From: Basidiobolus meristosporus CBS 931.73
Lineage: Eukaryota; Fungi; Basidiobolomycota
Direction: 5' to 3'
Assembly (NCBI GenBank): GCA_002104905.1
Contig: MCFE01000180.1
Location: 1-64,000 of the forward strand
DNA: 64,000 nt
Within the stretch, counting starts at the first letter, position 1, and the number at the start of each line of letters is the position of its first letter. This document shows, piece after piece, positions 1-39,572 of this stretch. The notes under the pieces are model-generated. The model was not told the origin of the DNA. It saw only the letters and a list, made by a program, of their open reading frames with translations, and did not search any database. The position numbers and the translations under genes were made by a program.

Positions 1-679
1 GAGAGATCGTTACTCTCAAGATTTACTTCGTTTATCAGAAACACCCCGTGTTACCCACTTTCTGCAAGATTATTGTATATCCAAGCCTATTTATTCCATT
101 CTCCAATTGCCCTGAACTCCAGTGTAATTTGGGATACTGCCTTGAGTTTAGCTTAGAATTCTATTTCATATTTTATTTAGTTTTACTATGGGAATTTGGA
201 GTTCCCAGCTTGCCTCTTTATTTGTAATTTGACTTGAACTAATTCAAATTAAGGCTTGACCTACATTAATGACTTTCCCACACTCATGAAGAACCTAGCT
301 TTCTAGCCACTCTTTGCAGTACTTTGGCTTCTTTAAACGCTGATATGGGAAGCTTACATATAACCAGCATTGATTATGATGCTCTTGGGCGTTCACTGCT
401 TCATCACCGGTGGATGATGAGAGGTTAGGGAGGCATTGGATAGTCAAACGATGAAAATTCGCAAGGAGCGGCTACGGATCTATCAAGCCGACCAATCCCA
501 GTTATTGGGTACTGTGGCGTTACGATGGATGCGCTACTGCGGAATATGCTGCTCGAAAGCCACACACTGGTGGATCATCCACGTCACCAAATGTGCCACT
601 ACAAAAGCTGCCTAATTACGAGTCCACACCCTTAACCACACTAAAACTAATAGCGTACTTCAGCTCCTCATTGACCACA

Positions 680-1519
680 ATGGCAAACGCCTCAACCGAA
701 TCCGATAGTCTTGTCTTTTACGACATTGCCATGCGTCCCCCGGTTACCAAAACTTGTTGTTCGCCGAATCCTTGGAAATCCCGCTATGCGCTTAACTTCA
801 AAAAAGTCCCATATTCTACCACATGGGTCCAGCTGCCGGACATCACAAAGGTGCGTCGCGAATTTGGCCTACCTGCTTCGCGCAAGTTAGCCGATGGATC
901 TGACTTCTACACACTTCCGATGCTCTCCGATCCCGCACACAATGCCAAACTCGGCGACTCCTTCGATATTGCCATCCACCTACAGAAGACATACCCGGAT
1001 TCCGGCTCAGGTGACCTGTTACCTCCCCAAAAACTCGACTACCGCTTCCCGCACGATTTGACAATGGTTGTGCCGCTCTCAGAACGTAATGACATCGAGT
1101 TCGCAGATTACTCTGTGTTCAACATGCACGTTGATGCAGCCTTCACAATACATTCGCAGCTCATGGCTCACGGTATCCCCTTCGATCCGACTATCGAACA
1201 CCTAGCCAAAGCGGAGTTCGTGCGCCGTGCTAACGCCACGTCCTGGGATGATCTAGCTTTGCGTGGCGAAGAGCGAGAAAAGCTCAAGAAATCTTTCTGC
1301 GACACGCTGGCACCGCTTGCAGACCTCTTTAAAAGGGAACCCAGTGGGCCGTTTCTGCTTGGGACACAGGCCAGCTATGCCGATTTTATTGTTGGCGGGT
1401 GGTTGAAAATGATGCAAGGAACCTTGCCTGAGGCAGAATGGGAAGAGGCAAAGGCGTGGCACGACGGCACCTTTGGCAAATTGCATGATGCTTTGCAGGT
1501 ATTTGCTGAGGTAAAGTAA
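680..1519 (+). CDS. Glutathione S-transferase, fungal GTE/LigE-etherase-like class (Fhb7-like), 279 aa, intronless
   Basis: First in-frame ATG of the 593..1519 ORF is at 680. Thioredoxin-like N-domain FYDIAMRPP..CCSPNPWKSRYALNFKKVPYSTTWVQLPDI, then TLP and GDSFDIAIHLQKTYP. C-domain GPFLLGTQASYADFIVGGWL..WHDGTFGKLHDAL. These match the LigE-like/fungal GST family as I recall it. Confidence 0.9.
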   Translation: MANASTESDSLVFYDIAMRPPVTKTCCSPNPWKSRYALNFKKVPYSTTWVQLPDITKVRREFGLPASRKLADGSDFYTLPMLSDPAHNAKLGDSFDIAIHLQKTYPDSGSGDLLPPQKLDYRFPHDLTMVVPLSERNDIEFADYSVFNMHVDAAFTIHSQLMAHGIPFDPTIEHLAKAEFVRRANATSWDDLALRGEEREKLKKSFCDTLAPLADLFKREPSGPFLLGTQASYADFIVGGWLKMMQGTLPEAEWEEAKAWHDGTFGKLHDALQVFAEVK

Positions 1520-2446
1520 TACACCGGAATCGATTGGCAAGATATATTTTCAACGCCCTTTGGCATATTGTAATGCTATATATTTCACTGAAGTAAATGG
1601 CCAGCCAGTCATCCTTATTATAGAAGAGAGGATTATTCGTTCATCAAAATAAACAAGTGAACTATCTGCGTTGGTTTAGTCCTGTCTAGTTCCCTGACCA
1701 AGGATAAATATGTCCGGTTTCTCCAAATCCCTCTTCCATTGGCCTTATTGCCATCCGGTTCTTTTCTGGTAGGAATGGCGCTCCCTTTGTGCCTTGTGCA
1801 GCCCTTCGTGCCAACATTTTGGGCACCGCCAACGCCATTTGTATTGGATTTGGAAATATGGGGATCCCTTTAGTGTTCAGTGTCCTGGCCCACGTTTTGG
1901 TCCAGAACAAGCATGACGTCACACAGCTTTGAACTAGCCCACATATTTCCACTGTTGCACTCGCAGAAGTGCCATTCTACTCTGGATTAACCTATCAGAG
2001 CGGTGCGATCTTTTTTATAAGCTTACTCGCATTGCCCCAACCCCATTTTGTGTATGTTATGTTGTAAATATTCAGTTTACACCTAAACCATTTATATAAC
2101 GTAAGATTCTACTTGGCTCAATACAGCACCAAGTGAATATCACGCATTTCTTCTAGTTCTCGAAATCACTTCCAACACTCCCTAGAATCTTGCAACATGT
2201 TAGACTTTGATTTGTAATGTATTTGGCTTGTTTTTCAAGGTCAATTGAAACAGTGATTGGATAACTAGGCATTGTCTTCTTTGATGTATGTCTGAGCCCT
2301 GTTTGTACCGGTGGCCAATAGGCCATAAGCTTTATGCAGTCATCATATCTTGGGTATCTTGTAAGAAAAATATCAAATATGCATTGATACCCAACATCAA
2401 AATCCACCGCACACATTAAAGGTGATAATAACCAAGTTGATCCTGT

Positions 2447-2793
2447 TGTTGTAAGAGCTTTGGAGATATTGGAAGTGATTGGGAGAACAAGCAGATTATG
2501 TGGTTTTCACTTAATGATTTATTGAATGTAAAAGTGGTATTTATACTTTTACATGGTCTTGGCAAAACAAACGCGTAGAATATGTTTAGGAAGGTCCCAA
2601 GAACATGTGTGCAAAGTTTGGTGCTGGTTGGACATCCTTGAGAAATTTCATGTTCTGGGTACCTGATGTTTTGGTGAAAATATTCCAAGTAAATCCCGAC
2701 AAGGAATTTGGTCAGTATTCTCTAAGATTTGTAGGTAATGATCTGTGACTAAGTTAGGTGAATATTTAGGTGGAGTTCCGAATTTTTACAACA
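2447..2793 (-). mobile_element. Solo LTR, Copia family A
   Basis: TGTTGTAAGAG...TTTTTACAACA, about 347 bp, colinear with the LTRs at 40487 and 44820. No clean TSD; GATCC/GATAC would fit if the start is 2444. Confidence 0.9.
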
Positions 2794-3079
2794 GATACCA
2801 TGGTGTTTGCTTAGTAACGGGTTACTTTGACTGGAGAATGCCTTCTCTAGCCCCCGGAACTTTGTCCACATTCACTTGGGATCTTCCTAAGCATACTATT
2901 TGTTCTTGTTTTGCCAAGACCATGTCAAAGTATTTATACCACTCTGCATCCAATCAATCACTTAGTGAAGACCGCAAAATCTAATTGTACTCCCAAGCAC
3001 TTCTGGTATCTCCAAAACTCTCAAAACAAATAGAAGCATGTAAATATCTAGCTAAATACTGCCTTAATCTATTGATTTG

Positions 3080-3200
3080 AATGTTCATATGGAAACAGAT
3101 CTATAATGCCAATTTGATGTATCTCCAGCTAATATACAAAGAGTTTGTAATGGGACTTGAGCAGCTTTGACAAGCATAAAACTGAATGCATTGATCCCTA
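3080..3200 (+). pseudogene. Short relic of CACTA/En-Spm transposase
   Basis: AATGCCAATTTGATGTATCT..AAGAGTTTGTAATGGGACTTGAGCAGC aligns by eye with the reverse complement of about 23180-23290. Confidence 0.55.
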
Positions 3201-5888
3201 AGTCTTTAGAATTGTGAAGCCAAGTGGTTCAAATGTGTGTATAATAATTTGGGTATGGGTAGACAGGGTCTGATTCAAGTGCCCGGAAAACACTTTCAGG
3301 ATCTTATCAAGATATTGGCAAAAAGACCATGAATGCCAAGGTGCCGGTGTTCTGAAAGTGTCTTGATGGGATCCTGATGGTCTGATCCAGGTCTCCTAAG
3401 TGCTTCCAGTATCTCCAAAATCACCGCAGTGAGGTTCACATGTCTTTATTTTGCAGTAAAAATTGTAGTTGTATGCATTTGTGAGACCGCGCTGATACAA
3501 AAAACATAATAACACTTATCTAATCCTTTCAACCAAAAAATCCATGCTTAGGTGGGTTAAACCCTCCAGTTCATGAATATTCGGGCTTCCACGACCTGTC
3601 GAATTTCTATAACCATTTGATAAAAGCAAGCACAATCGATTTCCACCAGCACAAGCTAGAAAACCATTCTGCTGATAACTGGAGTGCGATCGATGGATCG
3701 CTTATACACCTGCTGACGAGCATTTCACTAGTAACCTGAGGGGTATTCCCACCTGTGTGACAGTTTGTATCTTATGAGATAACTGACACAAATGAATATT
3801 ATCACCATGACGCAGCGTAGAGATAAAGTAGAAAATCACAACAAACGGTATTATGGCACATCGAAATTCGGTGGGATACGATAGTCTGCCGATGGATGGA
3901 CCGAAAATCACGACGTCTATGCGTGAGCACGGGATGTTCGTATACAATTGTCACTTCATACAAACTGCAAGCTCGCTACCGCGGCTCCATATGACGGGAT
4001 TGTTGGCCTAGCGAAGTCCACTGGATTCAGAACCCCAGGTTGGGACCAACCCATTTATTGATTGATAATGGGGCTACTGACGATGCATGCTAGCCCCCGC
4101 ACCAGCACCATGTCCATCCCATGAAGCGGCACGAGTACCCTCCGACACATGGACTGATGACTACCATCATAAATGTCAGTTGGCTGTTCTTCACTTACCA
4201 TCGACGAATAAAAATCCGGCGTTTTCCACCTGGAGATCCTACTAATGCAAGGTTGGACCGACACTCGGCAAGGTGTTGACTTCAATTGAGGTGAATCTCC
4301 AAAATTCCTCGGGATTCCGATTAGATGCACTTGGCTAGAGTGGTCGGGGGTTGGCCTTTCCACCATACGTGAGCTTGGTCACACCAATATCAATGCAGGT
4401 TAGAACTTGGCAAAGTTGATGCTTTTGACAACCTCGATGACTCTTCGTAAACGCGGAATTACCGAAAGGATAGAGTTTCTCGAAGATATGCACCTGACGG
4501 ACCACATGATTTCCGCATTTATCGGCGATTAGAAACCAGCCCATTTATAGGCAACAAAGCGCGCACCTCTGTCCAAGTTTCAGCGCACTCCATCCCAACA
4601 GTCTCGCCACCTGTAGAGGCTCACAATCCTACCTAGTAGTACATTGCTTTGACCTGGTTGAAACTATCCCATGGCATTCCCGGTATTAACCAGAATACAA
4701 CATTTATCTGGATTGGATATTTCACAAGATAGGCCGCTGTCTGGTATGTGTCTTTGAATCCCATTTAGCTGACTGCGGGCATTAGAACAATCAGCCCCTT
4801 GTCGGAAGCATTGTATCAAGGCCCTTCTAGTATCTAGCCAGCGGAAATCGTTGATGGACAATCAGAATACCTTACAAATCTAATGTCAGGTGCCACATTG
4901 GCGTATACAACGCTTTGTTGATGGTGATCTTCATCCACCCTCATCTTATGCAAAGTATGAAATCCAGCCGTTGATTCGCTCACAAATTATGGGCAATCCC
5001 AAAATTTTCGCCAGAAGTGATGTAGAATAGCATCATGTGGATGGGGTAGAAGAGCCAGTAGAAATACCGCCAAACACCCAAGTTCGAAATTGTCAATGGG
5101 GGTTAGTTCGGTTACTCTGTCGGCCGAAGGTCCACAAGTTGCACGGCTCACCATCACGCCAGCAATCGATCCTTTCTTGGGAGCATGATATCCAGAGTCG
5201 GCTCGCGGATCGTGGATGAGAGACCAGGCGGTTGCACACCGCGCTACAAACAGCATCAAGTGAGTGCCGGAGTACCGACGCGTGGCCTGCACGCTTATGC
5301 CGTGTCAGAATGTTGGCCGGCAATTGATTGAAATCAACCATGTAATAATTCCGCAATCAATGACCTTCAAACAATTTAAAGTCCCCGAATGTAGCCCGAT
5401 CAATATGTGGGAGAGTGGCTCAGGCTGATTCAGGCCCAACTGTTGAGTCCAGTCTCAGAGCACTGTAACAACCTGGGTAGAAGCCAAGCATCCAATGGCA
5501 TGGATCAGGCTAGGTACACGTTGCTAGCAGAAGTGAAAAGCAATGGGCTACGACGAGCTTCTGGACCGAGATATGCCAATCAAAGTTCGGTTCGAAGTGA
5601 GCCAGTAGACTAGACCTGGCGAGGAATCCAATACAAAGTTTGGATTCTGGCACCCAAGTATCGCCCGACGTGAAACGCCATCACGTGATCGCCTCCTCTG
5701 TAACCCAAGTCCATGTCCAAACCTGCCTGGCTTTAAATATCTGAGCATGCGCCGCGCTTGATATCAACAATCCCTAACTGATTAGTTCGCACGCCAATCT
5801 ATTTATTTATTTAGTTGCAGCCGGCGCTCCATTGTACCGACCCCTCCCTTTCCAAAGATCCTGTTCATTGTCCAGAGTCTTTGCGGCG

Positions 5889-7392
5889 ATGAGAACGCCT
5901 ATTGTCGTGATCCTCGTGCTAGTCTTTCTGGCCCACCTGGACATCGTGTGCAGCCAAAATGGGGATTACATTATTGTCACTGAATCCAACGCGGACTATG
6001 TATATGCCACTGTAACCGAGGGAGTGCCCGAATATGCCACTGTTAGCGGTGAAGGGTTCGAATACGTCACTCTGAATGGTCCAGAAAAGACGACCATGGA
6101 GACATCTAGTGTAGCGCAAGCCATGCCCACAAGTTCGCAGCTGCCGTACCAGCTCATAAACTACCACGGTGAACCTATGCTGGCATCCCCGAAGCAGGTG
6201 CTGGACCACGAAGCCGTAAAACAGGGAGAAAAGCTCCAGGAGGCCACCGACAAGGATCTGCTGGCCGGCGAGTTCGACGGGGTGGAGAACGAGAACACCG
6301 ATGAGTTGCTTCGTTATGCCGAGCAAGTAGCCAAAGAACGTGAGTCCAAGCTACGCCTGGGCCAGCAGTTTCTAAACGGTACCTGGGTCAGCAAGCCATA
6401 CAACACGACCTTCATTGATCCCAGGGTCCAGAAGTGGTTGAGGTTGCACGCGAACTACGCTGCGGCCGCCTACTGCTTCAAATTCAGTTTGTTGGACTGG
6501 TCCTGCCCGGACAAGTGCGTAGGGAACATGAATGTGCTGCAGTATTTCAGTAGCTTCTTGAGCGGGGTTGCTGGCTATGTGGGAGTCGATCGCGATCTAA
6601 GGAAGATCGTGGTCGCCTTTCGTGGGTACGTGTTGGACTGAAGTGACTTTCCTCTCCACTGAGATTAACCAATTTCCATCCACCAAAGCTCCCTGAATCT
6701 GCGGAACTGGATCTACAACACGGATATCATCCGATTGCCTCTGCACTACCCGGGCGCCTCTCCTGGGGTTCGGGTCCACGGGGGTTTCCTGAAGGCCTAC
6801 CAGGGCTTGAAGAACCAGGTCCGACAGGGAATGGAGAAAGTGTTCGCGCTGATCACCAAGGACAACGAGGACGTTTCTGACTACCAGGTGATCGTGACCG
6901 GGCACTCATTGGTACGTTTCATGAGCCTAGCAGCTGTGTACGTCTGGAATACTTAACCACTATGAATAGGGAGCAGCGGTTGCCGTACACGGCGCCCTCG
7001 ACATTAGGCAATACTTTCTGCTAAAATACCGGCTAGATCCGGAGAAGTTCTTCCTCCACACGTACGCCTCCCCACGAGCCGGTAACAAGGCATTCGGCCA
7101 GCTGGTGCTGGAGACCTTTTCCAATGGCGAGCCTTCCCTGAACCTGATCCGAGTGACCAACAACGCGGACCCAGTGCCGCATGTACCGCCCGTCCTGTTT
7201 GGCTACTCCCACTACCCACACGAAGTCTGGGTAAGGAACGTCTCGAGCACCGAGGCGCAGACCATCGATTGCAAAGACAAACTCCCCATCGGGTTTCGTG
7301 AAGACCCTCACTGCAACGGGGGGAAGCTGGCCCTGAACATTGCCGAGCATACACGCGCGTGGGACCTTATTTTCAGTAGCAGCACTTGCTAG
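5889..7392 (+). CDS. Secreted class 3 triacylglycerol lipase with long pro-region; exons 5889-6625, 6689-6911, 6970-7392 (460 aa)
   Basis: Signal peptide MRTPIVVILVLVFLAHLDIVCS. Two GTACGT..AG introns (63 and 58 nt, TTAAC branch sites). Splicing restores VAFRG|SLNLRNWI, VHGGFLKAY, GHSL|GAAVA (nucleophile elbow), TYASPRAGN, RVTNNADPVPHVP (Asp) and EH (His). Confidence 0.92.
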
Positions 7393-9710: not shown

Positions 9711-11043
9711 AGCTAGATGTAGCAAGATTACACTACCTCGGTCAATCGCAGATCCCAAATGGAAGTTCAACCGCAGAGGTGGTTTGTGGTGTAGGCAGGT
9801 CTAAGCAGCAAGAGGAGGGTGGGCTTTGGGATTACGGCTCTGAGCCTGACGGCAACTAGTCTTTATAGAAATTGCGCTGGTACGATGTGAGCTGCCGTCC
9901 ACCATTACCAAAACCCACCTGTTGCCTTCGCCACACCTGCCAATCACCTGGCCTGGCGGAATCCCACTCTGCCGGATTGGCTGCAGATGACACCGATGAC
10001 AGTTCGCCTCAAGTGCAGCATCTCCACAGAACTAACCATTGATGAGCACACATGCCCTGGCTGGCCAACCAGGTCTCCATGACGTCCCATTGCATGAACG
10101 GCTTTGCGCACTCCTCTCGAGAGAAACCGTGTGTGGATCGATTCCAGACCAAGATTTGCCCATCCGTTGGTGCCCTCAGGCTTCTGCAATGTGTATGGCC
10201 CACCACCATGTCCACTCTGACCATAGCTCCCCGGGCGATCGCTGGATCCTGTAATTCACCTTGATCTCCACCACACCAATCATCGTCGGTGTGAAAGTGC
10301 TGCCCCCTACCTAACCTGGCCAACGCCGAAATTGTGACTTTACTTGCACCAGACATTGTGACTGTATCAATCCCAGCAGCACACGACCAATGCAGTAGCC
10401 CGACGGTGTTCGAGAAGTGGTACGACTTCCACGAAGCCCTTCGACGGGTGCACCTTCCATACATCCCAACCACCAATCAAACCCCACCCCCGGTCGGGTG
10501 CTCACCATTCACCGGTCATTCCAGGCGGGCCAGAGGGATGCTCCCCACCAGCTTATCTATGCCAAGGCTCTGGCTCGAGATTGGCATCTGGTCGTCGCAT
10601 GTTTACAAACCGACCCACCACATTGGCCACCCATTGACACTTAACACAACGAGTGTTTCATGCAGCGGTGTTGTTTTTCGAGAGGCTGGAATTTGCCATG
10701 GGCCATCCCGGTAAAGTACGCTGGACAAAAATACCATGTGCAATGATGATGGATGTTGAACAGATTAGGAAATGAACAGTATATTTATATTGATTAATGT
10801 GCAATTAGATGGTCCTCTACCTTTCACCGATTAATCAATGTTGGGCGAGGATGAGTAAAGCCGATGAAGGGACATTAATGGAGGTTGGCTGGACGACCAA
10901 CACACCTGGCCCACCGAGAGTCTCTCTTTCATCACAAGGATCGTGGTATCTCGGTGAGTAAGGCATAGAATGAAAAAAGGGTCAACCAAAGGGTTTGCTA
11001 AGGTGGAAAGCTCTAGGTACAATAGCCACGGTTCGCTTCAGGC

Positions 11044-12855
11044 CTATTTGATGATCACTCCCGACTGATAATCATTGAACCAAAACTCCTCTTTGGAGAT
11101 GGTCATGCCTACCTCACACTCTTTGGTGCTAACTCTCACTCCTAACATGGGGTGAATCGGGAGGTCAATCTTGACGGGGAATCCGCTGGGAACCTCCCCA
11201 TCCTTGTGCACAACGTTGCATAACCTTGCGAATCCAGCCCAATCCAAGATCCCTCCTCCGAACAAATACTCCAGGACGGGCGCGATCTGGCTCAGAGAGA
11301 TGGGGAATCCGTTGTTGCCGCTGCTCAGGTTTTTGCTCTTGCTACCACCATTGGGTTGCGCCCAGCAAACCTTTATCGCCTGTTTACACTCGAATTTGAA
11401 CATTTGGGTGCTGACCTTGGCTTTGGAGAAGGAGATGGCCCCGGTGTTGCTCTCGTCGAAGTAGTCCTCGTAGTTGTCCGCCGCCGCTACTGGCATCAAT
11501 TCCTGCTCGGTGGAGTGCTCCTCTCCTAGTTGGTCCATGTTCACCTCATCCCAAGCCACCGATTGCCGTTTGCTTGCCATGTCTGACTTCTCGTTGCGCT
11601 TGAGGAACTTCAGTCTCGACCCCGACGACTTACCGTTTGAGTGAGTGCTATTTGTGTCATCATCGGAGTCCGACCCTAGGTCACTGTCCGAGTCTAGTGC
11701 TTCCTGAGGAGTCGTCTCTCCGTTAGGATGGTGAACAGTGCCCCCCAGATCATCGGAGAGCAGGGTGTCTAATCCGCTGAATCCTAATGAGCGAAGCTTA
11801 CTCAGAAGGGCATTGGAAGAGACTCGGACAGTGCGGCCATTGGGACTGGTCCACAGGTTTTCCACCAACTCGCGGACCAAAATGGATATGGAGACATCTT
11901 TGATCTTGTAGATGGTGGAGCCGTTCTTTCTCTTCAACAAGGATAGCTTGGTCTTCGACTCGCTTTGTTGCTTGATGGAAACATTCTGCAATGGCAGCCA
12001 CCACTTGACCATGGGTGAGCGCAGATAGTTCGCCACCAGATCGTTGATCAGGAACTCGGTCGGGTTCGGGTAGATCTCCTGAAGGCATTCCCGCTCATGG
12101 TCTACGATGAGTACCGTGGGCGGAAGTGGAAATGCTTGCGGGATATTTGGGTCGTCGGCACGCAAGATCAAGCTGAACCTACTCTGGTTGCTTTTCTTGA
12201 GGAACTGTCGACGTTTTTGGATCACATCGTTGGTCCTGTCGTCCTGTTGGTTAAACCCCCCGCTCAGCTGCATCGTTGTCTCCCCGAAATCCAACCTAAA
12301 AAACGACCCCTTCTTACGGATCCTTATGGCATCTCTGGGTAGGGCATGCCTGGCCAACATGTTGGACAGACGACTGGTGAACTTCCAGTGTAGCGTCATG
12401 TCCAGTGTCTCCCCCAAACGCTGATTCAGCAAGGCTAGCGGACCTCCCTCTGGTGGCGAGCTGGTCGCATATGTACACCCGTTCATCTGAGATGCGCCTG
12501 TGCTTCCTGGGTTCGCCAATGTGGGTGGGGCACACCAGTCTCTGGTTTGCTGTTCAATGGATTTTAGCATGATTTTCTTGACTAGGTCCCGATTCTGGAG
12601 TGCAACCGCATCATCTAATGGACTCCAGGACGGTATGCCGTTCCGATCTTTACGATGGCCAACACAGTCCGCTCCTCGGTCCAGCAAGAGGTGAGCGACT
12701 TCTGTGTGTCCCAAGAGCAAGGATAGTTGGAGTGGGGTGTTTCCGTGGTGGTCTCTTTGGTTGATTTCATTGTAAAGGGTGCCGCCTAGGGCGTTTTCCA
12801 GACCGCTTAGGTCGTTCTGGAAAACGAATCTATGTAAGGAATATTTCAACTGCAT
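11044..12855 (-). CDS. Ankyrin repeat domain protein 13-like (ANK repeats plus GPCR-chaperone domain), 603 aa
   Basis: Ankyrin repeats LHRFVFQND, GNTPLQLSLLLGHTEVAHLLLDRGAD and WSPLDDAV. ANKRD13-type segments LHWKFTS..PRDAIRIRKKGSFFRLD, FPISL and PSGFPVKIDLP. Start codon uncertain. Confidence 0.82.
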   Translation of the reverse strand: MQLKYSLHRFVFQNDLSGLENALGGTLYNEINQRDHHGNTPLQLSLLLGHTEVAHLLLDRGADCVGHRKDRNGIPSWSPLDDAVALQNRDLVKKIMLKSIEQQTRDWCAPPTLANPGSTGASQMNGCTYATSSPPEGGPLALLNQRLGETLDMTLHWKFTSRLSNMLARHALPRDAIRIRKKGSFFRLDFGETTMQLSGGFNQQDDRTNDVIQKRRQFLKKSNQSRFSLILRADDPNIPQAFPLPPTVLIVDHERECLQEIYPNPTEFLINDLVANYLRSPMVKWWLPLQNVSIKQQSESKTKLSLLKRKNGSTIYKIKDVSISILVRELVENLWTSPNGRTVRVSSNALLSKLRSLGFSGLDTLLSDDLGGTVHHPNGETTPQEALDSDSDLGSDSDDDTNSTHSNGKSSGSRLKFLKRNEKSDMASKRQSVAWDEVNMDQLGEEHSTEQELMPVAAADNYEDYFDESNTGAISFSKAKVSTQMFKFECKQAIKVCWAQPNGGSKSKNLSSGNNGFPISLSQIAPVLEYLFGGGILDWAGFARLCNVVHKDGEVPSGFPVKIDLPIHPMLGVRVSTKECEVGMTISKEEFWFNDYQSGVIIK

Positions 12856-15800
12856 TCTCAAGTCGTTGGCTATATTTCAAGTGGGCCTTGACCGGACGCT
12901 TTTGGGCTTGGCGGTTTTCTTGGGATTCAAGAAGGAAGTTGATGGAGTCGGTTCAAACACTCTTTTGTTTATCTTCTTCACTCCACTGTTGGATAGACAG
13001 GGTTCCTTTGGCTGGAGCCTTGTGAAGCGGTTGAAGCGTTGGTTTGAGTGGTGCGAAAGGTTGGGAGAGGGCTGCTGCCTACTGTAACCTAGTAAGTAAG
13101 GAGGAAATCACGGACGCTTCGCCTACTTGAAAGATTCTCAACTGAAGGCCAAAAAGAAACCGAAGCTAAGTTAGAAGAAATTCACTTGTGTGGTAGAGGT
13201 GCGTCTAGATGTCCAAGGTTCTGAGAACCTAGCTTAGATACTTTAAGTAAATGCACCTCATGTGTAGCAGTCGTAGCCAATCACCGACGGATCCAGTGAA
13301 TACCTGATCTAATCCTCTGAGCTCAGATGGTTTCTCCATAATTACTGAGGTACCACCACCATGACATAAACTCGACAAATCCGAGAACCGATTCAAAATT
13401 ATGCATTGTGGCCTATGTTAGGGGACTTTATCCTTGTGCTGCTTGATGCTTAACCTGACCAATCCCCAGGGTCAACCTCGATGCTGCTTTGGGTAGGTTG
13501 GGTTATTTCGGGCATTCGTTTTTGGTAGTGCTTTATCCCAATATGGATTCATGCTCGAACCCAGGTGTGATCTCAGGTCAGGATCCCCATATGATCTGCT
13601 CATCAGCCTCAGCACCACTCTCAGCAAGTACTAGATCCCTCCTAATCTAACTTGAAACGCACCTTATACTACAGTAATAAAATTCCAGCGCTGATATTGG
13701 TGCCGGGGAAGATGTGTTTCCCAAGTGTCACAGTGATGCGAATGTTTGTTTCGCGAGGAGCGGACACAACATCAGTGTTGTGTATCGAGGCGACTGCGAT
13801 GCGCCCCCCAAAATGGTAAAAATCCTCCAAAGGGGAGCGCTAGCACCTGGGTGCTGCGAGATCCAATCTTGGTGCATGCTCGGTGCAGGGATGGTCAGCA
13901 ATCGCCAGTGTGCTAAGAACATCCACGGCTAGTGCCCGGTTTCTCCATCAACCTGGCCTTATGTATTACCATTAATTCTATGCCTGATATGCTCCTTAAT
14001 CCTCCCTCCATCTAGAATGGACACCACACATCACTTCGCCTGCAAAATCACCAGCGCTGTTGTGCTGCAGTCATTGCCAAATCCAGCCGTCGTAAAATGA
14101 ATCCGTTGCCAAATGCAGTCGAATTGCCATTTCCGGTGAGGAACTGATTAGACAAGCTCACCTCATCACGAAGTGACTCACCCTCCCTGGTCAGAATCTT
14201 TCTAGCAAATGGGACGGGTTCCTAGAAACGAGGGCCAGGCCCCAGATACATTCTCCCGGGCTTGACCGCCAAACCCTCTGCCCACTTGACACCATGGCCA
14301 CCTAGACCGAGCGAAGCATCCCTCTCGATAGGAGCATCCGCACGCTCGCCATATACGACCATATGGGTGCAACATCAGACGCATCTGGTCAGTGTACAGC
14401 CGACGCACCAATGCGACCACGATGAACACATCATATAGGGACAAAATCAGGCGAACGTTTGACCAAAGCTCGATCGTTACGGAGATACCCGTCCATTTAG
14501 CATCTCAGCATCAGATCTCCACCCGCCTATCCTAGGAACCATTCCGAAACCATTAAATTGCCGATTCCTCTGCGTCCCCAGCCTCCACCTCCTCCCCCTC
14601 TCGGATCAACCAAGATGGGACGGTCAGGTTTTCGGGTGGTTTTAGCAGGCTTTTCTGCATCCAGCGACGTCCTTGGCAAGCACCAATAAGTCTCGAGAAA
14701 TCTGCCCTCCAGTGTACACCCCAGATCACATCCCCTATTTCCCTTGTGATACCCATTGGCATCTTCCCAAACCGCTCAGCCATGAGGGAATTCGGCCGGC
14801 GGTCTTGACGATGCGCGCAACACCATCCCTGCGATACGGCCAACCTCAGTGCCACGGACGTCTTGCCGAGCAGCACTGCCATACAGCACAGCTGGCTTCC
14901 TCTCGCAAGCATTCCAACCTGGCATGATCCTCGGATCCCAGGCCGGGATCGCTCTGCATAAGACATCGACGTGCACACCTCCTAGAATGGTCAGAGTTGG
15001 AGCGGTTTCGGTTTTGGTGACAGGAAGGCCTAATTCCCCCTTGGATCCGGTGGCACAGATAAATGGCTTGCCCTGGGCTATTGGTGGAAGCATTTTTGGC
15101 TGCTGGGTAGGATAGCGCCAGAGGTAGTGGTGGTGAATTCCGAGGGTGCCATCACCCCTGGTGACAGGCCGATGACGTCAGCGACCGACCCAGCAGATCC
15201 AAAAGAGTCGGGATTCGTTCTGGGATTCGGAGGGGCCATCTTTTGGAGATAGGTGCCCTTTGTCCCTCGCTTTGGGTACTTGGATGCAAAGGTATCATGC
15301 ATGTACATAGGCCATCTGTGGTGGGGGCACTGACTTGCGTGGAGGCGGTGATGTTGCTGCTGATCAGTGGATCCACGACTCGCATATGGATCTGCACAAC
15401 AATCCCGCAGCGGTCGCGAGGTACTGAGGTGATCTCGAGCCAAACGTTGGCAGGGGAAACCCGGGACTGGCTCTCGTGGACGGCAATCCGTATCCAGCGA
15501 TCCGCAGAACTACTATTCCAAGATAGGCTAACGGCTACAAGATTTCGCTTGGGAACGGTGTAGTCCGGAAGCGGTGGTGATCATGGTGAGGGGCGATTTC
15601 CAGCTCGTGGCACTTGGGCAACCATCCAGACCGGTTAATCTGATCCATGTTTCATTAACGTGCCCCCGACACCCATCACACTAAGCTAAATGGCATCTTG
15701 AGCGTGCTTGGATAGAGACGCTTGCTAGACATTCCGTCACCAGTCCCTAACCGGTGCTCTCCATTAAGGTTAGATTCGCCAATCCGTGGGTTGGACTTGG

Positions 15801-30487: not shown

Positions 30488-30687
30488 ATGTATGAGGACC
30501 AGTGAATGAACAATGGCATAAAGTTGAAGGGTTCCTGCCAAAGTTGTGGAAACAGAGTGTTACTGCAAAAGTACTATTGAGTAGTGTATTTTAATGGAGT
30601 TAATTGCTGAGTGTGGGATGGGGCCCAATATTGGAGAAACGTAAAGGGACTTGCATATGTCAATACAATTGCAATTGAGGTACCATT

Positions 30688-31035
30688 TGTTGTAAGAGTC
30701 TTGGAGATATTGGAAGTGATTAGGAGGACAAGTAGATTATGTGGATTTCACTTAATGATTTATTGAATGTAAAAGTAGTATTTATACTTTTACCTGGTCT
30801 AGGCATTATAAACATTTAGAATAGGTTAAGAAAGGCCCCAAGAACATGTTTACAGATTTTGGGGCTGTTTGGGCAACTTTGAGCATTTTCATGTTCTGGG
30901 TACCTGGTATTTTGGTGAAATATTCTAAGTAAATCCCAACAAGGAATTTGGTCAGTATTCTCTAGAGTTTGGGAGTAATGATTTAAGTGATTAAGTTAGG
31001 CTAATAATCAGGTGGAATTACGGATTTTTACAACA
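30688..31035 (-). mobile_element. Solo LTR, Copia family A, with TSD CCATT
   Basis: TGTTGTAAGAG..TTACAACA, 348 bp, perfect 5-bp TSD CCATT. Host accessory ORF continues across it. Confidence 0.93.
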
Positions 31036-32465: not shown

Positions 32466-35400
32466 GAAGACTTTCTTAAATTCATATGAGTATTGTCAAA
32501 AAAGTAATATAATAGCATTAAATTGTTAAGTACAGTTCTGTTTGCTACATGGAGAAGACTACTTTAATTCAACACTGTAAGAGAAGAGAAAAAGACCCTG
32601 AGGCTATTGTAACAAGCCTCTGAGCCATCAAGCACACAGCAAGCATAAAAAGTATTACAAGGAGCACAAACAGTGTTTTGTGTAATAAGTCATATTTGCT
32701 CCTTCATCAGTCACTTGGTACCATGTTTATCTTGCTGGTCATTTGATACTTCTACAACAGCACCCAGGCATACTTATCACCTAGCACAAATGGAGTCAGG
32801 TGAGTTTGTGGCACCTTTAGCCTCAACTGTGTTGTAAAAATTTGTATTTCCACCTAAAAATTCACCTAACTAGGTTACTTATATCATTACCTCGCATATC
32901 CTAGAGAATACTGACCAAATTCCTTGTTGGGATTTACCAAGAATATTTTTACCAAAATACCAGGTACCCAGAACATGAAAATCCTCAAAGTTGTCCAAAC
33001 AGCCCCAAACTTTGCACGCATGCTTTTGGGACCTTTCTTAGCCTATTCTACGTGCTTGTTATGCCAAGATCATGTAAAAGTATAAATACTACATTTACAT
33101 TCAATAAATCATTAAGTGAAAACCACCTAATCTACTTGTTCTCCCAATCACTTCCAATATACTCAAGACTCTTACAACAGGTTATGATCCTCAAGCTCTC
33201 ACTCTCTGCAATGTCTACTACTGCTGTTACTGGAATTTTTCCCTCTGCTGAAAAGTTGAATGGATCTAACTACCAAGTGTGGAAGGTGAAGATGAAGATG
33301 CTGCTACAAGAAAGAGGCCTTTTGGATGTTGTCATGGGAGAATAATGCCCTCCTAAAAATGTGGGAAAGGAAACCTTGAAGTACCAGAAGAAAGAACAAA
33401 GTGCCTTTAGCGGCATTTGCCTCAATGTTAAAGACAAATTACTAATTCAATGCTCAAGAGCAAAAATAGCAAAGAATGCCTGGGAGGTATTAGAAGACAC
33501 CTACCAGTCATTTTCAGCTGCTAAGAAAATGTATCTGAGACAAAAATTCTTTATTACAAAGATGCTGCCAGGAGAAGAAATGAAAAATCTAATTAATAGA
33601 ATTACCTTGCAGGTAGATGAGATGGAATCTGTGAGCGTACCAGCTACTGATGAGGATGTGATAGCTACCATCCTGAATAGCCTGACAGAGAAGCTTCAGG
33701 GCCTTGTATCAGCCCTAGAGCCCAGAACTGAAGATTTGACCTTAAATTATGTATATGGAAGGCTTGTTGATGAATAATTAAGAAAATCAAGTGCCAATAA
33801 GAAGGAAGAAAAAAATGCTTCAATAAGGATTGATAACCAACAAAGGAGGTACCCAAGACCCTACAAAGGCAACAGCAACCTGTTTTACAACTACTTCAAA
33901 AGGAAAGGACACACATCAGACCAGTGTCTCAAAAAGAAAGATAATCAGCAAAAGAAATCTGAATATGGAAATGCTGCAACAACTCAAGATAGACTATATA
34001 TATCTGCACTAAATATGACCACAAACAAGGATCCTCTGACGTAGTGTATTGACTCTGGAGCATCTCAACACTTTACACACCAAAAAGAATGTTTTACCCA
34101 ACATCAAGAAATTCGAATTAAGAAGGTTTTTATGGGTGACAATAGAACACTTGATGCAGTGGGAGAAGGAACTACCCAAGTAAACCCAAGAAGTAGTAAA
34201 GGAAGCCATACACTGACCTTTAAAGAAGTACTCTATGTACCAGAAATAGCCAAGAACCTACTATCTGTAAGCAAGGCCACTGCAGAAGGACTCAGTTTCA
34301 GCTTTGACAATTCTGGATGCAGGATCACTGATCAAAATGATGCCCATATTGCTTTGGGTATCAGAGATCAGAATCTATACAAGTTGACTTATATTCTATC
34401 ATATCTGGAAGCCAATATAAGTGACTTAACTGAAGAAACACCAATGCTTTGGCACAGGAGATTTGGGCACATCAATTTTGACTATTTGTGCAAAATGATC
34501 AAAGATCAGCTAATTTCAGGAGCAAAAATTGATCCCCCAGCCAATTTGGAGCACTGTGAAGCCTGCATATATGGGAAACAAGCCAGACAACCGTTCAAGA
34601 GCTCTGGGTTAATCAAAACTAAGAAAAAATTAGATCTAATTCACTCAGATATGTGTGGACCTATGCAAAATATATCCTTTGGTGGGATGAAGTATTAAAT
34701 CACTTTTATTGATGATTATACAAGATACACATTGATCTACTTCATGGAGAGAAAGGTAGAAGCTCTGTCTAAGTTCAGGGAGCTTAAAGCCATGGTGGAG
34801 AGAGAAACTGGTGAAGAAATCAAGAAAATCTGCTCTGACAATCATGGAGAATATACCTCAAAACTCTTCATCCACTTCTGCAAAATTCATGGGACAAAGC
34901 AAGAGACTACTGTACCATATTCCCCACAGCAAAATGGAGTAGCAGAAAGTGCTAACAGATCAATAATTGATATGGCAAGATCTATGATCCATGATCAAAA
35001 ATTATCCTATGATTTTTGGGCAGAATCAGTTGCCACTGCTGTATATCTTAAAAATAGAAGTTATAACAGAATGCTTTGTGATTCTACTCTACTTGAAGCA
35101 TGGTATGGATACAGATCAAGTGCAGAACATCCAAGAGTATCTGGGTGTACAGCATATGCCAAGAAACTGCCCGGAAAGCAGTCAAAATTTGAGCCAAAAA
35201 GTGTAAAATGCTTTTTTTTTGGGCTACTGCAATAAGAGTAAAGCATACAGACTCTACAATACCAAAGCAAAGAAGCTAATCAAGTCCAGGGATGTGTTGT
35301 TTGACAAAAATTCAAAATTTTTACAAAAATGACATCAGATGATGACAAAAGTTTGATCTCAAGTCCACCAATAGTCAGGTTTGAAATGGAGCAAAATTAT

Positions 35401-38400
35401 GAAATTGTTTCACTCCAGAGGACTCTACAACTGTGGCTCAGCCAGAATCAGTTCCCAGGAATATCCCAGAAATGATCATTCCAGTATCAAATTCCCAGGG
35501 ATCAAATCAGACAAGAAATAGACCAAGTCACCATATCAATGAGGGTACAAACTTAGCCTATGCCTATTCAGTCCATATATATGAGCCCCAGACTGTAAAA
35601 GAGGCCCTAAATAGCCCTCAGACAAAGTTTTGGAGATCTGCAATGACTGAGGAATATCAGGCCCTGATGGAAAATCAAACTTGGGACTTAGTCAAATTAC
35701 CAATCAACCAAAAATCAATTGGATGCAGATGGGTCTTCAAGACAAAATAAAGGCTGATGGTACAATTAAAGATACAAAGCAAGACTTGTAGCCAAAGGAT
35801 ACTCTCAAACAAAAGGACTTGACTATACTGAGACCTTTGCACTGGTAGCCAAGTTTAATTCTATCAGATTAATATTGGCTATTGCAGCCAAATATAAGTT
35901 TTTTACTCATCAAATGCATGTAAAAACTGCATTTATGAATGCAGAACTTGATGAGGATGTGTATATGAACCAGCCTGATGGGTTTGTTGACCAAGACAAC
36001 CCCCAATTGGTCTGCAAGCTTAAAAAGTCACTATATGGTCTCAAACAATCACCAAGGGCCTGGAATTGCAAGATAGATACCTATTTGGAATCTTTGAGTT
36101 TCATAAGGAGTAATTCTGACTAGAGTATACAGTATAAGCCAGATAGAGCAAATCCAGCTCTGTTAGCTCTATATGTGGATGATCTTATTATAGCCACCAA
36201 TGACCTAGAAACATTGGAAGAGACTAAATCCAGCCTATCTAAGGAGTTCAAATGTCTGATCTAGGAGAACTTAGTTACTACTTAGGGATTAAGTTCTCCA
36301 TAGACAGAAGTACCCAGACTATCACCCTAAGTCAATCCAAGTATATTCAAGATATACTAAAGAAGTACAAAATGGAAGACTGTAAACCGGCAGCTACCCC
36401 AATGGAGACAAACCTTAACTTGGTCAAAACTCAACCAAATCAAGAGAGCTTGGTGCCATCTGAAAGCCCTGACTTTCCTTATCAATCTATGGTTGGCAGT
36501 CTGATGTATATGATGCTTAGAACACGTCCAGATATCTCATATTCAGTGAGAGTTGTCACCAACATAATCAGAACTATGGATCTGATCATATTGCAGCAGT
36601 TAAGCCATTTTCAGATACCTAAAAGGAGCTGCTGATATCTGCTTAAGATAAACATATAAGAACTCAGAACAGGACCTTATGGGATATTCTGATGCTGACT
36701 GGGGACAAAATTTAGAAGACAGATGATCCACCACAGGATACATCTTTCTGTACTGTCAGGGAGCAATTTCACGGAATTCAAGAAAGCAACCAACTGTAGC
36801 ACTTTCTATCACAGAGGCAGAGTAAATGGCAGCCTGTGAAGCTACAACAGAAGCAATGTGGTTAAGAAAGCTGTTCACAGACTTAGGTCAATGTCAAAAA
36901 ACACCTAATACTTTATTTCAAGATAATTAAGTATGTATACAATTAGGTAGAAATCCAACTTTTCATGCTAGAACCAAGCACATACATATTGGACATCATT
37001 TCATACTTGAAGCTATAGAGAATAACTCAGTTACCTTAGTTTACTGTCCTACAAATGAAATGATTGCTGACATGTTCACCAAACCATTAGCTAGAGACAA
37101 GTTTGAATATCTTAGGTCAAAATTAGGACTAGTCAGTATGAACATTTAGCTAAGTGGGAGTGTTGTAAAAATTTGTATTTCCACCTCAATAGTCACTTAA
37201 CTAGGTCACTTAGATCATTACCTCTCATATCCTAGAGAATACTGGCCAAATTCCTTGTTGGTATTTACCTAGAATATTTTTACCAAAATATCAGGTACCC
37301 AGAACATGAAAATCCTCAAAGTTGTCCAAACAGCCCCAGACTTTGCACACATGTTCTTGGGATCTTCCTTAACCTATTCTATGTGCTTGGTATATGCCAT
37401 GACCATTTAAAAGTATAAATACTACATTTGCATTCAATAAATTATTAAGTGAAAACCACACAATCTACTTGTTCTCCCAATCACTTCCAATATCCCCAAG
37501 ACTCTTACAACAGACTCAACCTCCTGACTATGGTGCACAGAGTGATAGCAACAAAGCAGAAGGCTCACTGATGGACTGTGAGTCTATCTCCCCAGGTCTT
37601 GGTATCCTGCATGAGCCCAGAAAATCCTGATATGAAATGAGATATCACAAACAAAAAAAAACACCAAGGATACTCTATGGAGACAAGTGAGTCCAGTAAT
37701 ACATCTAAAGGTGATTGATGTGAAGCTGTGACTAGACAAGTGGTGTGTTTCTGCAAATAACAGTAATGGGGGCTTAATTTGCTGCCTATCTTTTGGTATC
37801 CAAGCAGAAATCTGATGGTAGCCTCACTGGCATCTGGGCCTGAATTACCATCCAACCTGGATAGCTACATGTATACATTGCTGGATGAGTCTTGTATGCT
37901 TTCCAGTGGGATATTACCAAATGGCCATCATGTCAAAGTGCATATTATTGGCTACATTATAGATACCCCAAACATCTGCAAGATAGCCGGCTTTTCTGGG
38001 CACAATGGATGGTTTACTGACCAATGTGTGAGCTTCAGGGGATTTAATCCATAAATTGCACCATTCTGATTATCAAAACACCCACAAAAAGAGCACCATA
38101 TTCCCATCAAGGGATGCACAGAAGTCAGCATGGAATTGTAGCAAAGTTGCCAAGCTACAAGCAATTGGCTGGAATATGAAATGACCAGAGAACCAGAGAT
38201 ATTAAAATAGAGTGTATTAGTTGGATCAAAAGCTACACACAAGGGGCAATACATTTACTTTCAACTATATTATTATACTAACTACCAGGTAGTACACAGG
38301 TCATTTCAAGTTAAATGAGCCCTTTGAGATATAAAATTTTGAAAGAATAGACAAGATATTACAGTGCATCTGCTACCCAAAGTACCTCACATGGGCACCA

Positions 38401-38767: not shown

Positions 38768-39572
38768 TGACAGCTTGGGGCTCATAACCTGTTGTAAGAG
38801 TCTTGGGGATATTGGAAGTGATTGGGAGGACAAGTAGATTATGTGGTTTTCACTTAATGATTGATTGGATGTAAAAGTAGTAATCATACGTTTACATGGT
38901 TTTGGCATAACAGACATATAGAATAGGTTAAGGAAGGTCCCAAGAGTATGTGTCAAAGTTTTGGGCTGTTTGGACAACTTTGAGAATTCTCATGTTCTGG
39001 GTACCTGTTATTTTGGTGACAATATTTGAAGTAAATCCTAAGAAGGAATTTGGTCAGTATTCTCTAGGATTTGAAGGTATTGATCTAAGTGACTAAGTTA
39101 GGTGAGTATTTGGGTGGAATTACAAATTTTTGCAACACTCCCACTCAGCTAAATGTTCATACTGACCAGTCATAATTTTGACCTAAGATATTCAAACTTA
39201 ATGTTAGCTAGTAGTTTGGTAATTATATCTGCACTCATTTCATCTGAAGGACAGCAAACTAAGCTAACTAAGTTATTCCCTATAGCTTCATATATGAAAT
39301 GATATCTAATATCTATGTGCTTAGCTCTAGCATTAAAAGTGGGATTTTTACTAATTGTATACATCCTTCATTGTCTTGAAATAAAGTAAATGGCATTTTT
39401 TGACATAGGCCTAAATCTGTAAAAAGCTTTCTTAACCACATTGCTTCTTTTGTAGCTTCACAGGCTGCTATATACTCTGCCTCTGTGGGAGAAAGTGCTA
39501 TGGTTGGTTGCTTTCTTGAGTTCCATGAAATTGCTCTTTTACAGTAAAGAAAGGTGTATCCTGTGGTGGATA
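38768..39572 (-). mobile_element. Copia A remnant: RNase H end, PPT, LTR (38790-39137), PBS stub
   Basis: LTR has CTCCCACTCAGC (PPT) on the right and GGGCTCATAACC (PBS) on the left. RH motif SWNSRKQPTIALSPTEAEY. Confidence 0.85.

Follow-up and report, generated by a model that had tools for sequence, protein, structure and literature searches.

Background

Fhb7 is the best-known fungal gene giving crops resistance to Fusarium toxins, and its transfer into a grass is already known; its natural history in fungi is poorly described. Here we describe a gene of the same type, whose product is a glutathione S-transferase (GST), in the fungus Basidiobolus meristosporus CBS 931.73. It lies in a stretch of 64,000 nucleotides, hereafter the window, that covers positions 1 to 64,000 of the 141,690-bp contig MCFE01000180.1 of assembly GCA_002104905.1 and therefore starts at contig base 1. 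Our reading, which taken as a whole we give a probability of roughly 0.7, is that the gene encodes a working Fhb7-type GST and reached the B. meristosporus lineage by horizontal gene transfer (HGT) from a Mortierellaceae-type fungus, after which it was duplicated and retained.

The structure of Fhb7 has been solved and the residues N30, K33, W243, N150, D154, D93, S94, Y235, R68, V161, L168, F182, M246 and R185 have been mutated, the R68A enzyme being inactive (PMC10900206). The spread of the enzyme class in fungi is also known, including an active Mortierella homologue: deoxynivalenol (DON) is detoxified by CtGST, PsGST, NgGST and the homologue of Mortierella sp. GBA30, and CsGST83044 has neither the long loop nor DON activity (PMC10900206). 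For Basidiobolus, imports of bacterial genes have been described (PMC7466969). In the library searched, no paper links Fhb7 with Basidiobolus. What the present locus adds is a well-controlled case for the transfer of an Fhb7-type gene between two early-diverging fungal lineages, followed by duplication, and with it a second, independent sign that such a gene is useful enough to survive transfer. Transfers between fungal phyla are rarely backed by unsaturated synonymous sites; here these are accompanied by in-family and native controls.

An Fhb7-type glutathione S-transferase

680-1519, plus strand: Fhb7-type (Asn-type, GTE-subfamily) GST gene, identified by its open reading frame (ORF), Pfam, structure matches, catalytic residues and ratio of nonsynonymous to synonymous substitution (dN/dS)

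The ORF opens with an ATG at 680, its stop codon ends at 1519, and it encodes 279 amino acids (aa) on the plus strand with no intron or interruption, in agreement with the intronless 840-bp GST described in an earlier note on this DNA. A 308-aa ORF from a GTG at 593 is a mere in-frame upstream extension, and every homologue begins at the ATG. Pfam recovers the two-domain architecture of a thioredoxin-like N domain and a helical C domain, with scores of 27.7 bits for GST_N_2 (cut-off 25) and 51.4 bits for GST_C_7 (cut-off 27). The best match among solved structures is CtGST of Colletotrichum tofieldiae (7yp0; E 3e-118, query 4-279). Fhb7 itself (7yoc; E 3e-110) is collinear with the protein from end to end, query 1-279 on chain 3-283, with only two 1-residue gaps and with the long alpha2-alpha4 loop (Fhb7 105-140) present. 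The Fhb7-like motifs listed in the earlier note are all seen in these two alignments, and its identification of the gene as an Fhb7-type GST is upheld by Pfam, the full-length structure matches and the conserved residues.

Twelve of the 14 residues mutated in Fhb7 are identical in the Basidiobolus GST (N30, K33, R68, D93, S94, N148, D152, F180, R183, Y233, W241 and M244, in Basidiobolus numbering), and alanine mutants of these lose activity in Fhb7. The Asn30 network N30-K33-W241-N148-D152 is present, at positions that are invariant or nearly so in 121 family members, as is the glutamyl-carboxylate network of D93, S94 and Y233 (Fhb7 Y235). R68, the epoxide activator in Fhb7, is likewise present and is invariant in 121 of 121 sequences. 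In addition, the window copy carries Pro29, Tyr77 and Phe95, family consensus residues that stabilise engineered Fhb7, and Pro29 occurs in both intact Basidiobolus copies (the second is described below), which thus represent new natural enzyme variants with stabilising consensus residues.

Because 12 of the 14 residues are kept, the two that differ vary within the family, and homologues detoxify DON, glutathione-dependent opening of trichothecene-type epoxides is the best-supported predicted function. The protein would be a working cytosolic enzyme in which Asn30, held in the Asn30-Lys33-Trp241-Asn148-Asp152 network, stabilises the glutathione thiolate as in Fhb7, and Asp93, Ser94 and Tyr233 would grip the glutamyl end of glutathione. 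Arg68 would polarise the epoxide oxygen and the thiolate would then open the ring, for example converting a trichothecene 12,13-epoxide into a non-toxic glutathione adduct. The adaptive value may lie in defence against trichothecenes or other epoxides from competitors in litter, soil or gut; a litter and gut fungus may need such protection.

Homologues and gene tree

A search of a collection of 5.8 billion proteins returned 606 matches to the GST, and the statements on homologues made here refer to the best 120, all with at least 60% identity. The best non-self matches are all from Mortierellaceae (Podila minutissima, P. horticola, Linnemannia gamsii, L. exigua, L. elongata, L. zychae and Mortierella sp. 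AM989), at 74-78% aa identity and with a length of 278-279 aa each; the codon alignment of four fetched Mortierellaceae copies has no gaps against the Basidiobolus gene. Next come Aspergillus and Penicillium (66-68%), ahead of other Pezizomycotina (60-65%). No GST of Basidiobolus ranarum is among these 120 matches, though its proteome is in the database. Mucorales, Glomeromycotina, Kickxellomycotina, Zoopagomycotina and Entomophthoromycotina are also absent from the best 120, whereas the search made with the native gene ISU1 found all of them.

In the maximum-likelihood (ML) tree (62 rows, LG+C20+F+G4) the two Basidiobolus copies join at 100/100. Together with the Mortierellaceae and two soil-metagenome sequences they form one clade, with an ultrafast bootstrap (UFBoot) of 100 and an SH-like approximate likelihood ratio (SH-aLRT) of 98. 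Within the Fhb7-type family this clade belongs to a basal polytomy, alongside the Penicillium decumbens group and a large, mostly pezizomycete remainder.

Other rows from outside Pezizomycotina are also found in the tree (P0080, P0039, P0041, P0093 and P0055). Embedded among Pezizomycotina are the GSTs of the bdelloid rotifer Adineta vaga, whose gene lies on a 16.9-Mb contig, of the chytrid Quaeritorhiza haematococci and of two yeasts, Zygosaccharomyces bailii and Torulaspora delbrueckii; the gene of a second Mortierella lineage (sp. GBA30) is paired with Penicillium alfredii at 100/99. From their placement in the sequence tree, the rotifer, chytrid, yeast and GBA30 genes are further candidates for transfer. 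In L. zychae, contig JAAAHV010000474.1 carries a fragment of about 70 bp (L008:2900-2971) with 79% DNA identity to the 3' end of the GST (window 1451-1518) and 71-86% when translated; its position is 3 kb upstream of the intact b copy, and it has the look of a relic from another copy.

Synonymous sites

The evidence that carries the case for transfer comes from synonymous sites. The Basidiobolus GST is 81-83% identical at the DNA level to the genes of L. elongata, L. gamsii and P. horticola, with a proportion of synonymous differences (pS) of 0.34-0.41, a synonymous divergence (dS) of 0.46-0.60 and differences at 33-40% of 4-fold sites. At sites with identical amino acids the same codon is used in 69-76% of cases, against 35-36% expected when synonymous codons are redrawn from each gene's own usage (z 10.0-12.6; 0 of 2000 simulations). 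Compared with the in-family control, Penicillium hispanicum, the same gene has 65% DNA identity, a pS of 0.79-0.80 and differences at 67-70% of 4-fold sites, and codon sharing is 38% against a null of 34% (z 1.1).

ISU1, among the most conserved eukaryotic proteins, served as a native control; it is intronless and adjoins the second GST copy. The B. meristosporus protein is 73-79% identical to those of Mortierellaceae and has matches in all zygomycete groups. Against L. zychae (72% at the protein level) its pS is 0.83, and codon sharing is 40% with 37% expected (z 0.7). Within the genus, B. meristosporus and B. ranarum have a pS of 0.73 for ISU1, and for ANKRD13 they share the same codon at 44% of 471 usable sites and differ at 60% of 4-fold sites. 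The GST is therefore less diverged between Basidiobolus and Mortierellaceae than these two native genes are between two species of Basidiobolus, which vertical descent cannot explain. Since the two species are saturated at synonymous sites, the genus must be old; it is also rich in duplicates. By the usual fungal tree, Dikarya are nearer kin of Mortierellaceae than Basidiobolus is, and still the Mortierellaceae GSTs are saturated against Penicillium.

Host locus, copies and apparent expression

The earlier note had taken the host for an early-diverging, non-ascomycete fungus, and this is correct: besides the identity of the strain, close relatives of the ANKRD13-like neighbour at 11044-12861 (minus strand) are confined to B. 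ranarum (81%, 76%) and to paralogues within B. meristosporus. Around the GST we found the neighbours that had been named, that is, a lipase (Lipase_3), a 4HBT thioesterase, a 7-TM-like ORF (GPCR-like in the earlier note) and ANKRD13 (ANKRD13_C). Each of the two Basidiobolus species has several diverged paralogues of ANKRD13 (66%, 50%) and of ISU1 (90%, and 82% in B. ranarum).

The integration of the gene was followed in X1, a genomic run available as Logan contigs that contains 91% of the sampled words of the window. Its contigs match positions 1-691, 1432-2103, 2082-2476 and 2750-6000 without any difference and join both ends of the GST to the upstream repeat, the long terminal repeat (LTR) and the lipase side. 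The depth at the GST junctions is 137-178, against about 157 in single-copy flanks, and inside the GST the contigs split only through bubbles caused by paralogous variants. The view that the contig is not a contaminant is borne out by these exact contigs across both junctions, by a host LTR 0.9 kb away and by a second copy elsewhere in the genome.

243-1920, plus strand: CpG-retaining unit of about 1.7 kb, made up of the GST with about 440 bp upstream and about 400 bp downstream, delimited by the observed/expected CpG ratio (CpG o/e) and by its blastn duplicate

The second intact copy, ORY05671.1 (L006:7733-8572), is 95% identical to the window copy in aa and is flanked by gelsolin and DAO genes at a point 7.7 kb into contig MCFE01000023.1. 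The duplicated unit there (L006:7282-9067) matches by blastn at 88% over 1449 bp and then at 83% over 236 bp; the two loci share window 238-1917 and nothing beyond. Carriage as transposon cargo was considered and rejected, the unit edges (about 243 and about 1920) having no terminal inverted repeats or target-site duplications, and the 1.7-kb unit reads as a plain segmental duplication. Between the two copies dS is 0.25 and dN/dS 0.095; both are therefore under purifying selection.

A third GST variant is known from the reads. It is 12-14% divergent from the window copy, has single-copy depth in X1 and is absent from the annotated proteins; it is recorded in X1 on window 843-1404 and in a further run, X3, on 668-981 and 1061-1344. 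Of 34 printed sites at which it and the window copy differ, 21-22 show the base found in Mortierellaceae in the third variant. It is probably an earlier-branching paralogue and may be the oldest GST copy in Basidiobolus.

668-1512, plus strand: stretch under contigs of X3, a run that behaves like a transcriptome of B. meristosporus CBS 931.73

Around the GST, X3 has contigs on 668-1512 only. An exact contig of the window copy (914-1237) reaches a depth of 2,102 and contigs of variants reach 9,840-15,743, the peak (15,743) belonging to the third variant; the lipase has a depth of 179 and window 1600-2000 a depth of 0. This suggests that the GST is strongly expressed, with the kind of run being a guess and contig depth a rough measure. 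X3 also has exact contigs, at a depth of 48-87, on window 3914-5010. This interval, which separates the LTR from the lipase and has no called gene, may correspond to a transcript missing from the annotation or to an extended 5' part of the lipase mRNA.

Codon usage was dropped as proof of foreign origin. The GST has a G+C content at third codon positions (GC3) of 0.57, against 0.66-0.74 in three neighbours, and its correlation with them in relative synonymous codon usage is 0.08-0.28, against 0.46-0.50 among those neighbours; the native ISU1, however, has a GC3 of 0.41, so host genes are too variable for such a test.

Proposed origin and direction of transfer

In the sequence of events that we propose, the B. 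meristosporus lineage would have acquired the GST after its split from B. ranarum, the source being a Mortierellaceae-type fungus or some very close relative of the Mortierellaceae gene. The GST would have become established, with flanks of its own, as a unit of about 1.7 kb, spread by duplication to at least two and probably three loci, and then been kept under purifying selection and apparently transcribed. From distribution and branch lengths, Mortierellaceae are the favoured donor and Basidiobolus the recipient, because Mortierellaceae carry the gene in at least seven species from three genera and as two paralogue lineages, because no B. ranarum GST is among the best 120 of 606 matches, and because the Basidiobolus branch is the longer one at synonymous sites, as expected after entry into a new genome. 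Measured from the central node, it has about three times the synonymous change of the main Mortierellaceae branch (worked by hand from dS). Searches with blastn and tblastx found no flanks common to window 1-6000 or L006 and four Mortierellaceae loci beyond the ORF and a leader of about 15-20 nt. There is also no synteny among the Mortierellaceae GST loci themselves, to which we give little weight as these loci may be paralogous.

Several observations weigh against this reading. On the side of function, F180, M244 and R183 of the DON pocket are identical to Fhb7, but Fhb7 V161 is replaced by S159 and L168 by I166. Both positions are variable across the family; in the C. tofieldiae sequence P0115, which we equate with the DON-active CtGST, they are occupied by T and F. 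The run X3, from the same study as X1, is labelled 'DNA?', its kind being guessed and its contig depth rough. As for distribution, weaker homologues in other zygomycetes could lie beyond the best 120 of the 606 matches, and the B. ranarum contigs with the ANKRD13 and ISU1 orthologues (L005, L011), in which an empty site was looked for, end short of the GST position. Two runs of a diverged isolate with the same species label (X4 and X5) contain short GST-like pieces, and the gene may be wider in Basidiobolus than the annotated proteomes show. The Basidiobolus pairs of ISU1 and ANKRD13 could be paralogues, the genus being duplicate-rich. Finally, Basidiobolus, the b paralogue of L. zychae and the main Mortierellaceae lineage form a trichotomy in DNA and protein trees, which in the DNA tree persists with all sites and with codon positions 1+2, and a tree that forces every non-Basidiobolus sequence into one clade withstands an approximately unbiased (AU) test (delta lnL 30.5, p-AU 0.083). 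The ML tree and topology test suggested in the earlier note thus gave a divided answer, with the clade of Basidiobolus and Mortierellaceae at 100/98 and this species-tree-like constraint still admissible, and the protein topology alone is therefore not decisive for transfer.

The alternative that survives best, though we consider it unlikely, is a common third donor: Basidiobolus and Mortierellaceae would each have received the gene separately, at about the same time, from an unsampled lineage such as a soil ascomycete or another early-diverging fungus. The polytomy within the clade, its basal position in a mostly pezizomycete family (by the Penicillium decumbens group and the rows P0046 and P0014) and the non-syntenic places of the Mortierellaceae copies would all fit. 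However, every named member of the clade among the best 120 of 606 matches in the 5.8-billion-protein collection is from Mortierellaceae, and its two members from metagenomes fall with L. elongata and Mortierella sp. AM989. Two paralogue lineages over at least three Mortierellaceae genera suggest long residence there, and the nearest outside sequence (P0046) is only 65% identical.

Transfer in the opposite direction, from the Basidiobolus lineage to Mortierellaceae, is quite unlikely. The topology leaves direction undecided and Basidiobolus has at least three diverged copies, but the distribution that marks Mortierellaceae as the donor (at least seven species and two paralogue lineages, against no B. 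ranarum GST among the best 120 of 606 with that proteome in the database) would have to be explained otherwise, and the roughly threefold synonymous change on the Basidiobolus branch is what a gene adapting to a new host would be expected to show.

Vertical inheritance from an ancestor common to zygomycetes and Dikarya, which would require that almost all early-diverging lineages lost the gene and that it evolved at an unusually low rate, is very unlikely, even though the AU test (p-AU 0.083) and the position of the clade near the base of the family would allow it. Codon sharing is twice the saturation level (z 10-12.6), whereas the Penicillium and ISU1 controls are saturated; native genes of two Basidiobolus species are further apart than this gene is from Mortierellaceae; and the best 120 of 606 matches include no other zygomycete group, whereas ISU1 finds all of them. 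The earlier note had held that orthologues spread across early-diverging lineages and following the species tree would speak against transfer; orthologues do occur in one such lineage, at a divergence that is far too small for the species tree.

A direct transfer from a pezizomycete to Basidiobolus, as the earlier note had it, would leave the similarity to Mortierellaceae incidental and is hardly tenable. Most family members are Pezizomycotina and the gene is intronless, as in Penicillium. Nevertheless, identity to every pezizomycete among the best 120 of 606 is at most 68%, against 74-78% to Mortierellaceae; pS is 0.79 against Penicillium (saturated) and 0.34-0.41 against Mortierellaceae; the clade with Mortierellaceae has support of 100/98; and we found no pezizomycete sequence with more than 80% DNA identity to the Basidiobolus gene. 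What stands of the earlier proposal is that the gene is very probably horizontal in origin and independent of the Epichloe-to-Thinopyrum event; what falls is a direct origin in Pezizomycotina. Contamination or mis-assembly, in which a foreign GST was joined to the end of a Basidiobolus contig, is practically negligible: the gene is only 680 bp from the contig end and differs somewhat from three neighbours in GC3 (0.57) and codon usage, but short-read contigs reproduce both junctions exactly at flank-like depth (about 137-178 vs about 157), the second copy is embedded 7.7 kb within another Basidiobolus contig, with gelsolin and DAO on either side, a host copia LTR is 0.9 kb away, and the gene is only 81-83% DNA-identical to any known Mortierellaceae gene.

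Transfer from a Mortierellaceae-type fungus would give a lead: Basidiobolus, whose known imports have so far been bacterial, may exchange genes with Mortierellaceae. In the light of the GST, exchange between the two fungi may also be considered in place of two separate acquisitions from bacteria for genes described in PMC7466969. A wider reading, possible but doubtful, makes the GST one sign of a more extensive and fairly recent movement of genes between Mortierellaceae and Basidiobolus, itself part of a repeated passing of an ORF-sized Fhb7-type gene between phyla and kingdoms.

Flanking sequence and repeats

1-242, no strand assigned: high-copy, CpG-poor repeat between the contig end and the GST unit (X1 depth 17,667 vs about 157; CpG o/e 0.40)
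2447-2798, plus strand: solo LTR of a copia family (85-92% to at least six other window sites)
2858-3029, minus strand: partial inverted copy of the copia LTR (79% to 2446-2618 reversed; 75-77% to other LTR copies)

The CpG-retaining patch coincides exactly with the segment duplicated on the other contig. CpG o/e is 0.88 in the unit (243-1920) and 1.02 in the ORF, against 0.40 in 1-242, 0.48 in 1921-2446 and 0.34 in the LTR. The patch reported in the earlier note is thus real, with CpG-poor immediate flanks, but past 3 kb CpG-normal gene DNA resumes for the next 14 kb and strongly depleted DNA (o/e 0.10) begins only at about 18 kb. The contig-end repeat (1-242) matches L006:1578-1851 at 76%, and the contig probably ends at window position 1 owing to this repeat, whose first 200 bp have a depth of 17,667 in X1.

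The solo LTR does belong to a family that recurs in the window, as had been claimed, with matches at 30687-31035, 32830-33179, 37161-37512, 38790-39137, 40487-40835 and 44820-45173 (85-92%). The last two flank copia ORFs (40847-44438) and delimit a copia element at 40487-45173. The summed depth of X1 contigs on the copia LTR (2401-2800) is about 2.1-2.2 million, against about 157 for single-copy sequence, and the family appears to be present in thousands of copies. Window 18000-64000 consists of 46 kb of nested copia and gypsy elements, among them an intact 1377-aa gypsy polyprotein at 49187-53320, with a CpG o/e of 0.10 and normal GpC, adjoining the CpG-normal gene block; the loss of CpG points to CpG-directed, methylation-linked decay of repeats.

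Comparison with known systems

The classical GTE/Ure2pB-like GSTs (Phanerochaete GTE1, 4f03; Ceriporiopsis CsGST83044, 6j3h) share with the Basidiobolus enzyme the superfamily, a similar G-site and an N-domain match of E 1e-19 to 1e-25, but their alignment is limited to the N-terminal ~100 residues. CtGST (7yp0), PsGST, NgGST and MsGST of PMC10900206 have all the catalytic residues in common with it. The rows of CtGST and MsGST (P0115 and P0055) are about 61-62% identical to the Basidiobolus GST, and it is for these four homologues that DON activity has been shown. MsGST, of the Mortierella sp. GBA30 lineage (P0055), belongs to another clade, beside Penicillium alfredii, and not to the Mortierellaceae clade that contains Basidiobolus.

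With Fhb7 of Thinopyrum elongatum (7yoc) the Basidiobolus GST shares full-length collinearity, Asn30-type thiol activation, the D93-S94-Y235 network, Arg68 and the long alpha2-alpha4 loop. Both genes are intronless, and the Thinopyrum copy was also gained horizontally, from an Epichloe-like fungus. Unlike Fhb7, the Basidiobolus enzyme has two 1-residue loop deletions, S in place of V161 and I in place of L168, and the consensus residues Pro29, Tyr77 and Phe95; here, moreover, the recipient is a fungus and not a grass, and the nearest relatives are Mortierellaceae.

Those Mortierellaceae GSTs (for example Podila minutissima BG006_002500, P. horticola BG003_007687, Linnemannia gamsii BGZ96_000655, L. 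elongata and L. zychae) come from a different phylum, have different neighbours and share no flanks with the Basidiobolus loci beyond a leader of about 20 nt; their GC3 is 0.65-0.68, against 0.53-0.57 in the Basidiobolus genes. They have the same length of 279 aa with no indels, are intronless, are 74-78% identical in aa and 76-83% in nucleotides with a dS of about 0.5, and form one well-supported clade with the Basidiobolus GSTs.

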